A stretch of DNA of 64,000 bases. Origin: Trichosphaerium sp. ATCC 40318 (lineage: Eukaryota; Protista; Tubulinea). Of the stretch, positions 17,469-24,428 are shown piece after piece. The stretch's first letter is position 1. Each line of letters opens with the position of its first letter. A program made the translations under genes and the position numbers. The notes beneath the pieces were generated by a model. It saw nothing but the letters and a program-made list of their open reading frames with translations. It did no database searches and was not told the origin of the DNA. The DNA lies in assembly GCA_038496445.1 (NCBI GenBank), contig JALMLS010000213.1:310001-374000 (forward strand). The letters run 5' to 3'.

Positions 17469-18819
<1,351 letters not shown>

Positions 18820-20000: not shown

Positions 20001-23000
20001 ATGAATACAGCATTGCTGGAAGCCATACATAAGAAACCAGGTAACTGTACTATTGCTTCTATGTGCTAAAATAGACTACAGAACTAAAAGATGGTTCTAA
20101 AACCTCTAAAGCACCACCAATATTACCCCCAACACCGCCGAGCGTACGAGTGCATGCCCAATCAAAAGAGATAAACACAAGTGCTCCTCCACCGCCTCCT
20201 CCGCCTAAAAATGCCAAAAACGACATCCCTGGGCCGCCACCTCCTCCAGGAGCAGCAGTTAAGTGCCCTGTACCTACAGCGCCTCCAATGCCGCTTAAAA
20301 CTGGTGTCCCAGCCCCACCACCTCCTCCAGGGGCAAATAAAGGTGCTATTCCACCACCGCCACCAATGGCGAGTACAGGACCACCAAAACCACCTAGCGG
20401 TACTGTTACGCGTCGAAAATGGACAACAGCGGTAGATAAATCTGAAAAGCCTGAACTTCCTCCGTTTAAGATCAGTACGTTCACAACTAGCTCTAAAAAC
20501 AAACAACCTAACAAATACACAGAAAAAGGAGATTACCTATTTTTGGATTGGAGTAAAGTAGATGATTTACTTTTATCAGATACAGGGAGCGCAGTACGAT
20601 TTTTTCCTTTTTGTCGACTTTGTGTCGCTTATTTTTTGTTCTAAAGGGTGTATTCTTTATCAAAACACCTACTGGTACTGTAGTTATTAAAGGTTGCTCC
20701 GATATTGTACAGGTAGGCTAACATTTCGGCAAGTTTTATGCTCAGTGTTCTTAATTTTTTTTTTAAAGCAAGTATATGCTACGGAGCTTGCACTCATTCT
20801 TGATGTTGATGTACCAAAAATGAGAGTAATTGATTGGAGCGCACCAAGACATCGTTGGAGTTTATTAAAGAGCAAGATGACAAGCCTTGCGGTAAAGCGC
20901 TATGGACAAGGAAAGGCATGCAAAGTTAGAAAAGAACTTAACCGTGCACAATTCTTGGCAATGGAGGTATTGTAGTATGTTATAGTATCCTAGAGAGCTA
21001 ATATTTTACCTAGGTTGTAGTCGGTAAAGAGCTATTAGCTTATGGAGCAGATGGATTAAAATACCTATTTGGGCTATCAGCAGAGTGCGAGCTTTGAAAT
21101 TGCTACTGGCATTGTTTTAATAGAGTTTTTAGCTTTATTGGTGACAGAAGAGGTTCAAGAAATAGATTGCGCCAATTGGGTAGAGTGATTGGTTATGATA
21201 TACTCATAAATAACTGGGATCGAGTGCCATTGATATGGGAGAATGAGGTAGATTGATTGGGACTATTAAAGAAAAATCTAATGTAAATAGGGAAACTACA
21301 GTAATATTATGGTTGAAGCATTGCCTGGTGAAGATGGTTTGCCAGTGTACGTATAAGAATATATTATACAGGTTTTATACTAATGGTTTAAAATAGTATC
21401 CGTATTGTGGGTATTGATAATGGCACTAGGTAATAGAGTCACTTTGGTTTTTTCTCGTTTTGTTCTAACTTTTTTTTTTGCATTAGTTGTCTCAATAAGA
21501 AGATGCACAGTGTAGGGTATAACAAATATGTAGAAAAAATTAAGAAATGCTTGGAATCGATAATAAAGAACCCTTGCAAGGAACTCCCTGCTTTGAAAAA
21601 GTTCAGGGAATATGTAAAGATGGCAACAGGCTTCGACATGGGAGAAGCAGCTTCATTGCAGGTATTGATGATTTTTTTCAATTTGGTTGAAAACAGATGA
21701 TGAGCTTGTTAACACTGTTGCTTATAGATTCAAATGGGTATTCTGGAAATAATTATCAAAGCATCTAAGCTACAGCTTGATGATTTTAAAAAGCTGAAAA
21801 CAAAGGTTGCGGGTATGATTGGCACTGATTGGGCAGACGTTTGGAAATCTGGATTAGGCGTCATATTCCCAGAGTTTTTTAAGGATATTGTTGATCTTTT
21901 TAAGTCCTTTGAGGAGAGTGCTAATATTTTATTGGCTAAATATCCAACAACTCATATCATGCAACCATGCACATCTGCGATTAAAAGAGATGAGTTTAAA
22001 CATGATAATGTAAAGATATTAGTTCTACAAAATTTTGGATTCCATGCTAAGGAAGGTGCCAACTTTATTCGTGGTTTAGTTGCTAAAGAAGAGCGTAAAC
22101 CTGGTAAGCTTTATAATATCAACCGATTCTTAATTATACTTACTGTTCATCTAGACTTTATCATTTGGCCTGAGCATGCATTAAGATACAGCGGTTTGTA
22201 AGTTGGTTTTTTTTCTCGCTATTTTCTGGGTTGTTGGCTTATTCTTATCGTTAATGTTTGTAGGGTAAACGACTCTATTTCACCTGTTAAGGACTACTGT
22301 AAGCTAGCAAAGGAACTTGAAGCGTACATTGTACTTGGAAGTACACTAGAAGTAGAGGATGGTAAAATGTACAATACGGCAATAACAATCAGCTCAGATG
22401 GTCAGTATCTTGGAAAGTATCGTAAAAGAAAACCTCTTGGAAACCATACAGTACCTGGTACTGAAGTTGCGATATATGATACAAAATTTGGAAAGATAGC
22501 AATCATGTACTCTTGCCTTTTTTGAAGTTTTTTTTTTCTCACTTTTTTCGTGATTTAGGATATGCTTTGACATCGAAAATCGAGATGTTTTTGATGACAA
22601 TGTTGCCGAGAAACCATTCCTTATACTCAATCCTGTATTGATCCCATCGCCAGCATTAGAAAATGATGATAAGAAGATTAACGTAGCGTGGAATATTGCT
22701 AGAAAATCAATGGCAAGGAAGTTTGAAGCACTTGCTACTAAGCATAACTTTACGCTTGTTCGTTGCGATAAACCTTTTGAGAATGAGAAGATGGTATTTG
22801 GTATGTTGATGTGCTTGAGATTTTGAAGTCAGCTAACACTCTTAAACTATAGGTACTTCTCAGGTTGTAGGTCCATCAGAAACTGTCCTTGCTCCAAAGA
22901 TGGGAACTTGTCATTTCTATGCTTATGCAGATTATCATATTGACAATCAATTCCAGGTTCGTCATGGAGTTCTTCTCTACACATATTTCTATGTGGTTGT

Positions 23001-24131
23001 GTCCATTAGCTAATTTGTTTCGGTTCAGGGGCCAACACCAGATAGACCACGTACAGCTGTTGAAGATAATACAGGTACATTTGATACGCTCTATTTTTTC
23101 TTAACTTATAATCTCAGGAAATCGTTACACTACGAAATTATTCGCTCAACCGTCAACATGTGCCTGTGAAGTTTCGATTACTCCTAGTATGTTTGCGTGC
23201 AGTAATGGAAATACACTAGATATTGTGAACATATCTAGAGGGTACTTTGAGGCTACAACAAAACTCAAAGGAGACATCAATTCAATTGTTTGGTATGTTT
23301 TTTTTTTCTTGTTTTATTCTGATTTTTATTACCTTTTAGCATTGATGATGTAATCATGGTTGCCACGGACTCAACTTGTTATACCCTGACAAAGAACTTA
23401 AATGTCGTTAAAAAGACCAAGGTAGTCTATTCAGGGCTGTATAGGGTTGATGGAGAGAAGGTGGTCGCTATTAAAGAAACGTCACTAGGTACTTATCTTT
23501 TTCTAAAGTTGCATCTAAGCGTTATTTAGATCTTTTGGATAAGAAAGGAAAAGTACTTGATACTGCCAAATGTGTTATTGAGAAAGCGTCGATTGTATGT
23601 GCTCATGGGTGTAGCGTATTCATTGCTGAAAATGGAAAAGTATCAGAGTACAATACAAACGCTAACAAATTTGAGAAAAGAACTATTGTTTCAACAGAAT
23701 ATAACATCTCGAGCATTTCCTTGGTTCCCTCAGAACCTAAACAACTGGTAATTGGTGATACTAATGGAAATATCCATATTGGTTCAATACCTGGTATGAC
23801 ATATATCTCTAACGATTTCAAACTAACAATGTTGCCCCTTTTAGAAACAACAGAATGGAAAACTTTGTCAATCTCTAAAGAGCCTATTTCCAACATTTCT
23901 GTTGTAGACTCTTCTGTCATTATAGTATCACATGGTTCTACACTTTCTCAGGTTAATATAAACAAAGAACTTAACCCAGTGCGTCATCTCTTCACAGTAG
24001 ATTGTGGGTTGATTTCGAAAATCGCTTTATGTGGATATTGTATAATTGTTTGTGGAGAGAAACGATTAGCTGTACTAGAGTTTGCTCAAAATTATCATAA
24101 CATACCACTACCGAGAATGTTAGGTCTGTAG
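20001..24131 (+). CDS. Multidomain protein: WH2-like motif + polyproline + actin-fragmin kinase catalytic domain + carbon-nitrogen hydrolase (nitrilase) domain + WD40-like propeller
   Basis: ALLEAIHKKPELK; PPPPP tracts; SDTGSAGVFFI..VVIKG, LGRVIGYDILINNWDRVPLIWENEGNYSN and VGIDN (AFK); FIIWPEH, YNTAITIS..GKYRK and KIAIMICFD (nitrilase E-K-C triad); beta-rich repeats such as LVIGDTNGNIHI. Confidence 0.8.
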
Positions 24132-24428
24132 ATAAATAAATTGTATTTGGATGAGCTAAATGCATTAGTTTTTTATCTTTTATTAATAACAGCTTAACCG
24201 TGAGGCAGGTATTTGCATAACCTAGTGTAACAACATGGCTAGCAAGGGTTATAGGTATTGTTTTGAAAAACGTCACAAGTGTGCTTAGGTGTATTTGCAC
24301 ACCAGCCGCGCAGTTGTAAATGAATATTGATCATCACAAATGTAACAGATGAGGGTATAAACGCATTATTTAGCATACACAGGATACTTTATATATTTTG
24401 CTGTTTATGACGCTCAGGGTACGATTGT

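Follow-up and report, generated by a model that had tools for sequence, protein, structure and literature searches.

Positions 20001-24131 on the + strand of a 64,000-nucleotide stretch of Trichosphaerium sp. ATCC 40318 DNA (assembly GCA_038496445.1, contig JALMLS010000213.1, positions 310,001 to 374,000; this whole stretch is termed the window) very probably constitute one gene for a four-module protein, in which a polyproline head is followed by an actin-fragmin kinase (AFK)-type atypical kinase, a nitrilase-superfamily domain and a WD40-like β-propeller tail. The fusion of kinase to nitrilase is physically real, lies within one exon and is conserved in other eukaryotic contigs. The combination of kinase, nitrilase and WD40 modules is a new domain architecture of known parts, conserved in a few eukaryotes, from which we infer the function of the fused protein.

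Gene structure and transcript evidence

The + strand of the region is split into many short open reading frames (ORFs), and the gene model was built by hand by joining these frames at GT-AG sites, with one intron added from cDNA. The model comprises 19 exons and 18 GT-AG introns of 41-72 nt, and runs from an ATG at 20001 to a stop codon at 24129-24131 in a stop-free frame that encodes 1064 residues. The G+C content of the region (~37-39%) matches that of the rest of the window, and no second copy of the gene was found within the window.

The RNA data are the Logan contigs of one public run (X1). The run is cDNA, since its contigs skip introns and one of them has a template-switch oligo end. 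Twelve splice joints are found as modelled in these contigs, namely those of introns 2-8 (kinase), 14-17 (C-terminal part of the nitrilase domain, and tail) and 18. The X1 contigs show zero differences from the window in the listed pieces, and contigs at least 99% identical to it sit on both halves of the gene. No X1 contigs cover 20001-20343 or 21632-22758, and intron 1, exon 10 and introns 9-13 are unseen in RNA; a further search of public runs for the junction region found only a DNA run with a small share. Intron 1 (20041-20081, 41 nt, GT-AG) is predicted, without RNA confirmation. Chance as the origin of the model is excluded by the chain of 18 introns with an open frame of 1064 codons, the 12 cDNA joints, and collinearity with homologues from three other sources.

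20001..24131, + strand: whole gene; continuous frame with 12 cDNA-confirmed joints, the other joints backed by collinearity with homologues
23794..23844, + strand: intron 18; 51 nt, in frame and stop-free, skipped by a cDNA contig

Intron 18 had been overlooked when the ORFs were read, and the 17 residues it would encode score the lowest predicted local distance difference test (pLDDT) values in the AlphaFold2 model of the tail.

Three further features of the X1 contigs were noted. One cDNA contig begins at 22898, inside nitrilase exon 14, preceded by the letters GTATCAACGCAGAGTACGGG, which resemble a template-switch oligo; this cDNA 5' end could reflect a truncated template or an internal start, and depth there is low. 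At 24335-24367 several contigs stop or turn into unrelated letters, and at one joint 31 foreign letters lead from 24367 back to 24336. The probable cause is either the 3' end of the transcript, ~200-240 nt past the stop codon, or an overlap with a neighbouring transcript. Within the polyproline-coding stretch, depth spikes to 57.6 at 20344-20504, where the contigs are only 90-95% or less alike and continue into unrelated sequence. The spike is cross-mapping of other proline-rich transcripts and not expression of this gene.

Homologous loci

A HMMER search of 1.84 billion protein representatives with the junction ORF, a query specific to the linker, returned four fragments and no full-length annotated protein; annotated protein sets lack the architecture, since gene calling of the prokaryotic style breaks it up into fragments. 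Loci L001-L004 belong to one organism and lie on a 581-kb eukaryotic contig of 48% G+C (JGI, Logan). At L001, polyproline and kinase exons lie upstream of a 274-codon frame, and the nitrilase domain, a connector and a WD40 tail lie downstream. Locus L005 (JGI, 38% G+C) carries the C-terminal kinase helices and the nitrilase domain up to its Cys in one frame, and in L006 (ENA, 33% G+C) the order is again polyproline, kinase, helices, nitrilase up to the contig end. The module order recurs in three other eukaryotic contigs (L001, L005 and, as far as its contig reaches, L006), and its recurrence at 30-50% identity shows it to be an ancestral feature of a small eukaryotic group. The C-termini of the window protein and its relatives are homologous, and the best-conserved segment of the whole protein is the nitrilase core, at 48-49% identity to L001.

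A further locus, L007:900-3152 (GCA_049309645.1, JBJQOG010004391.1), encodes polyproline, an AFK-type kinase and DWAGVWxSGL helices, with no nitrilase detected within ~2.1 kb downstream of the kinase. It suggests an unfused sister form or one that has lost the fusion. That L007 has kinase and helices with no nitrilase detected speaks for the helices being part of the kinase module.

Other searches returned no additional relatives. A word-indexed search with the homologue P0003, under a length filter that leaves out full-length proteins, returned only P0003 itself. A metagenome scan with the linker profile found no relative, and one with the nitrilase core found 51 loci, all of them generic nitrilases without a kinase; three of these that were named are spread over different generic branches. 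With the L001 junction frame, ESM Atlas features gave only sub-threshold, unrelated matches.

The kinase-nitrilase junction

As the earlier note had described, ORF 21734-22201 carries the kinase helices ADVWKSGL..FFKDIV (residues 458-477) through to VKILVLQN (residues 517-524), uninterrupted by a stop codon or an intron; the exon itself spans 21728-22103.

21728..22103, + strand: exon 10, spanning the junction; final helices of the kinase, then ~35 residues of variable spacer, then VKILVLQN as the first nitrilase strand (alignment A1)

The flanking joints can be followed in the homologues. In alignment with uninterrupted frames of L001 or L005, no gap falls at joints 9/10, 10/11, 12/13 or 13/14, and a 3-residue indel lies beside joint 11/12. 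The 274-codon frame of L001 (L001:9974-10795) takes in, without interruption, the kinase IDN motif, the helices and the nitrilase PE motif with its Glu. In L005 a 40-nt phase-0 intron (L005:109-148), absent in L001, occupies the exact position and phase of window intron 9 (21662-21727), the shared boundary falling after S-L/I-Q and before I/F-Q-M/L-G. The position of intron 9 is conserved between two short-intron genomes of 37-38% G+C.

These observations bear on two other ways of reading the locus, both of which were rejected on the homologue frames, the intron match, composition and cDNA. The region could hold two adjacent genes, a polyproline-kinase gene ending 12 codons into what is modelled as intron 9 (stop at 21698-21700) and a nitrilase-propeller gene beginning at the ATG at 21734. 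Read-through of intron 9 does hit a stop, an ATG does open ORF 21734-22201, no X1 cDNA contig spans 21632-22758, and L007 offers an example of kinase and helices with no nitrilase detected downstream. However, stop and start would then lie only 33 nt apart, and the kinase fold would be cut, since residues 290-308 of Physarum AFK align to the opening ~20 residues of exon 10. L001 moreover holds the entire junction in a single uninterrupted frame, the L005 intron agrees with intron 9 in site and phase, and no loose end of poly(A) type was reported for the cDNA contigs near 21700, so that two separate genes are very unlikely. An assembly chimera or contaminant joining unrelated genes is scarcely credible. 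No point in its support was found, and it is opposed by the uniform composition across the locus, the likeness of intron style throughout the gene, the cDNA contigs of at least 99% identity on both halves, and the same order of modules in independent assemblies from JGI, ENA and Logan. Misassembly, which had been named beforehand as an outcome that would overturn the fusion, is excluded by the homologues. The single-gene model with the fusion inside exon 10 is the one followed below.

The AFK-type kinase domain

20585..21892, + strand: AFK-type atypical kinase domain (residues ~182-477), exons 2-10; Pfam PF09192 and alignment to 1CJA through L001
20689..20691, + strand: kinase Lys199 (VVIKG), aligned with 1CJA Lys97 through L001
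20769..20771, + strand: Gln207, at the position of 1CJA Glu105; Glu in L001 and L007, Gln in the window and L006
21218..21223, + strand: catalytic Asp325-Arg326 (NNWDRVP); NNWDRLP..NEGN of L001 aligned with NNSDRLP..NEGN of 1CJA
21242-21296, + strand: NEGN (residues 333-336), split by intron 6, aligned with NEGN of 1CJA
21416..21418, + strand: Asp360 (GIDNG), equivalent to the DFG Asp; GIDN kept in L001, L006 and L007

The Pfam family Act-Frag_cataly (PF09192) matches exons 4, 6 and 9 with E-values of 1.4e-4, 2.1e-10 and 9.4e-3, covering profile positions 65-126, 133-177 and 226-274 of 282; the profile was scored per exon piece, as the introns preclude a score for the whole domain, and one piece reaches 40.9 bits against a cutoff of 24. 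The relation to Physarum AFK (1CJA) can be traced through L001; at 41% identity to the window protein in the kinase region, L001 aligns with 1CJA residues 69-133 in the N-lobe (E 9e-7) and 177-221 around the catalytic loop (E 2e-6). With profile A1, 1CJA 249-308 aligns weakly (E 0.045) from the end of exon 9 to ~20 residues into exon 10, and the C-terminal kinase helices IQMGILE..DWADVWKSGL..FFKDIV are encoded in exon 10.

The Lys, Asp-Arg, Asn and Asp residues that had been reported for the kinase are all present, as K199, D325-R326, NEGN and D360. The 1CJA counterparts of the Asp-Arg motif are D203-R204, and the Asp-Arg pair together with an insertion before the Asn are hallmarks of AFK (PMC1261164).

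The nitrilase-superfamily domain

22010..22956, + strand: nitrilase-superfamily domain (residues 517-758), exons 10-14; Pfam PF00795, PDB sequence matches and the AlphaFold2 model of L005
22172..22174, + strand: nitrilase Glu554 (IIWPE); PE motif kept in L001, L005 and L006
22424..22426, + strand: nitrilase Lys616 (YRKRKP), from alignment A3
22445-22447, + strand: His623, at the second-Glu position (Lys+7) of generic nitrilases, from alignment A3
22563..22565, + strand: nitrilase Cys645 (MICFD); MICFD(V/I)EN common to the window, L001 and L005

On exon 12 alone, CN_hydrolase (PF00795) scores 36.5 bits (E 4.3e-9; cutoff 23.2), and the same family scores 47.3 bits on the homologue P0003 and 46.2 bits on the homologue L001. 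An AlphaFold2 model of the homologue L005 (L005:149-865), which spans about two thirds of the domain, has pLDDT values of 84-96 in its nitrilase part and adopts the α-β-β-α sandwich fold. Its top Foldseek matches, Nit3, Nit2, PH0642 amidase and N-carbamoylputrescine amidase among them, fit about equally well (E 5e-10 to 1e-8). PDB sequence matches of the nitrilase domain are likewise spread, over Nit2, PH0642, Nit3, Nta1 and amidases. The NCBIfam models (Lnt, archaeal nitrilase, formamidase, CPA) assign no named branch, the best scoring 25-36 bits against cutoffs of 133-500. Yeast Nta1, which had been named as a nitrilase-fold enzyme acting on protein N-termini, is only one of many equally distant matches, and the domain was assigned to no branch with a known protein substrate.

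In a 35-sequence alignment E554, K616 and C645 occupy the PE, RK and C(F/Y/W)D columns. The PE motif and the catalytic Lys are identical in all four loci, and MICFD in the three that reach it, the L006 contig ending before that point. At Lys+7, the position of the second catalytic Glu (Glu142 in the Geobacillus amidase), stand His623 in the window protein, Arg in L005, Glu in L001, and likewise Glu in most generic nitrilases of the alignment. The loop after the catalytic Lys is shorter than in Nit2, Nit3 and PH0642. The description of the domain as an intact nitrilase therefore holds for the Glu-Lys-Cys triad (E554, K616, C645) and fails for the canonical tetrad, whose second Glu is His623.

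The N-terminal head

20004..20095, + strand: WH2-like motif NTALLEAIHKKPELKDG, residues 2-18, with predicted intron 1 inside it; alike in spacing only
20111..20395, + strand: proline-rich region (residues 24-118) in which four runs of 5-7 Pro occur, from the translated sequence

The N-terminus ALLEAIHKKPELK depends on predicted intron 1 and is followed by the four proline runs. Polyproline runs upstream of the kinase are also present in L001, L006 and L007. Polyproline sequences bind profilin and SH3/EVH1 domains and are typical of actin-assembly factors. The motif NTALLEAIHKKPELKDG resembles the WAVE-type LLxAIxKxxxL(K/R) motif, its likeness to WH2 being limited to the spacing LLxxIx(5)LK. 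Residues 1-34 have no Pfam match at E<=10, so WH2 (PF02205) is not supported, and a regular-expression scan of L001, L006 and L007 found no equivalent of the motif. WH2 identity was rejected as unproven on these two results. The polyproline part of the proposed WH2/polyproline head is retained and the WH2 part is not.

The connector and the WD40-like tail

23050..23128, + strand: connector RTAVEDNTGNRY, nitrilase to propeller; pattern RTxxED(N/C)T(G/E)NRY in L001 and L005
23118..24128, + strand: WD40-like β-propeller tail (residues ~774-1064), exons 16-19; Pfam on the L001 tail, AlphaFold2 and Foldseek on the window tail

The tail of L001 matches 17 WD40-type families in Pfam (best E 1e-8), and the match of the window tail is weak (E 0.06). 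An AlphaFold2 model of 23532-24128 is all-β with a pLDDT of 67, and Foldseek returns only WD40 propellers for it (E 1.6e-5, template modelling scores of 0.6-0.68). No Kelch match was found in the tail, where the Pfam families are WD40-type only, and a Kelch tail was rejected on the Pfam and Foldseek results. The tail is thus a β-rich propeller, as had been proposed, and is WD40-like rather than Kelch. The connector motif RTxxED(N/C)T(G/E)NRY is common to window 23050-23128, L001:11183-11995 and L005:889-1473.

Elsewhere in the window, an ORF on the - strand (17823-18149) has motifs, LGACVNAPM among them, that resemble those of the 24-kDa subunit of mitochondrial complex I (NDUFV2), for which it is a candidate.

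Comparison with known systems

Physarum AFK and PHS1 are the nearest known proteins. Physarum polycephalum AFK (1CJA; PF09192) is one that shares the kinase fold family, and with which the glycine-rich strand and its Lys, the NNxDRLP..NEGN loop, the IDN motif and the C-terminal helices align. Both proteins also have a C-terminal β-propeller and a proline-rich segment. However, the propeller is Kelch in Physarum AFK and WD40-like in the window protein, whose proline-rich part is N-terminal, whose Gln207 stands in place of 1CJA Glu105, and which inserts a 240-residue nitrilase-superfamily domain between kinase and propeller. PHS1 of plants and green algae, a MAPK-phosphatase-like protein compared by description, also fuses an AFK-type kinase to a second, unrelated catalytic domain (PMC8783414), and is the only two-enzyme AFK precedent found; its partner is a dual-specificity phosphatase, and it has no propeller or polyproline head.

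Fused nitrilases such as NitFhit, glutamine-dependent NAD+ synthetase and Lnt similarly join the Glu-Lys-Cys fold to another module (PMC9913352, PMC6946656, PMC5500890). None of their partners is a protein kinase or propeller, whereas the window domain is joined to both, is placed in no named branch by NCBIfam and lacks the second Glu in this species. Lnt and Nta1 show that the nitrilase fold is able to act on proteins. The Dictyostelium myosin heavy chain kinases place an atypical kinase before a C-terminal WD40 domain and are directed to the cytoskeleton (PMC1420674), but belong to the α-kinase family and have no nitrilase domain, so that the analogy is one of layout only. No literature linking actin-fragmin kinase with nitrilase was found, also when searched by Pfam and InterPro identifiers, and no paper or annotated protein with this architecture was found, the protein searches being a linker-specific junction query and a length-filtered word-indexed search, without a domain-pair query of eukaryotic proteome collections. 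This agrees with the earlier note, to which no description of the fusion was known.

Proposed mechanism and alternatives

In the mechanism that we propose, an active AFK-type kinase would phosphorylate a cytoskeletal protein. The polyproline head would recruit the kinase to profilin or to SH3/EVH1 partners at actin-assembly sites, and because it would place the kinase at such sites, actin or an actin-bound complex would be the favoured substrate. The propeller would dock the substrate or a partner, as Kelch may in Physarum AFK and as WD40 does in the Dictyostelium myosin heavy chain kinases. The nitrilase domain would form the two-fold dimer of its superfamily and thereby dimerise the kinase; functional superfamily members are reported to be built on a dimer (PMC4700190), for which reason this domain should dimerise the protein. 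The domain would probably keep thiol-dependent amide chemistry with a non-canonical fourth residue. Retention of the chemistry is argued from the Glu and Lys being the same in four loci, the Cys in three, and the core being best conserved, and chemistry that is non-canonical or lost is argued from the missing second Glu. Such chemistry would be expected to act on the target of the kinase or to be co-regulated with it, the analogy being PHS1, whose AFK-type kinase is controlled in cis by a second catalytic domain. This mechanism is held with much lower confidence than the architecture, and the two together, as the best overall explanation of the locus, with moderate confidence.

Several points weigh against this explanation. 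The junction between kinase and nitrilase is not seen in any X1 transcript contig (gap 21632-22758). Gln207 could lower kinase activity if its position is that of the helix-C Glu, and without the second Glu catalysis by the nitrilase domain may be altered or lost. The nitrilase model is that of a homologue over part of the domain, and the WH2 motif fails in Pfam. Actin is not established as the substrate, since AFK-type domains also phosphorylate tubulin (plant PHS1, PMC8783414). The earlier interpretation is supported in part, for the fusion and its conservation, and not for action of either enzyme on actin.

Two alternatives were considered. The nitrilase domain might be a pseudo-enzyme, retained as a scaffold that has no amidase chemistry and serves to dimerise the protein or to space kinase and propeller apart. 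The replacement of the Lys+7 Glu by His in the window and by Arg in L005 fits this, as do the short loop after the Lys, the NCBIfam branch models all far under their cutoffs, and the dimer basis reported for functional members (PMC4700190). However, PE and Lys are the same in four loci and MICFD in three despite overall identities of 30-50%, the core around the catalytic residues is the most conserved part of the protein, and L001 retains Glu at Lys+7, which leaves a scaffold without chemistry doubtful though still credible. The kinase might instead target tubulin or another protein, as in PHS1, with the fused second catalytic domain mainly gating the kinase in cis. PHS1 supplies the model, its kinase domain being highly similar to AFK and described as acting on tubulin in fusion with a phosphatase-like domain (PMC8783414), and Physarum AFK is the only AFK ever shown to act on actin (PMC1261164, PMC4758236). 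Against this, the window protein has no phosphatase domain, and the homology comparison was made with Physarum AFK (1CJA). The polyproline head, a feature generally associated with actin-assembly factors, is also kept in the homologues. A target other than actin is considered unlikely.

The proposed cytoskeletal kinase with a dimerising, possibly active nitrilase domain has a more specific form, a two-enzyme modifier in which the nitrilase fold would have a protein rather than a metabolite as its substrate and might deamidate or deacylate actin, profilin-actin or another partner, recruited by the polyproline head and the propeller, alongside AFK-type phosphorylation. We regard this form as quite unlikely; if true, the cytoskeleton would be subject to coupled post-translational modification of a novel sort.

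Implications

To our knowledge, AFK-type kinases are a small, poorly understood atypical family with only two known activities, on actin (Physarum) and on α-tubulin (plant PHS1). The nitrilase fold, with its nucleophile in place, offers a possible protein-directed activity to explore, and the fusion gives a lead on the control of AFK-type kinases by a second catalytic domain. The conserved subfamily described here is a testable lead on new cytoskeleton regulation in protists.

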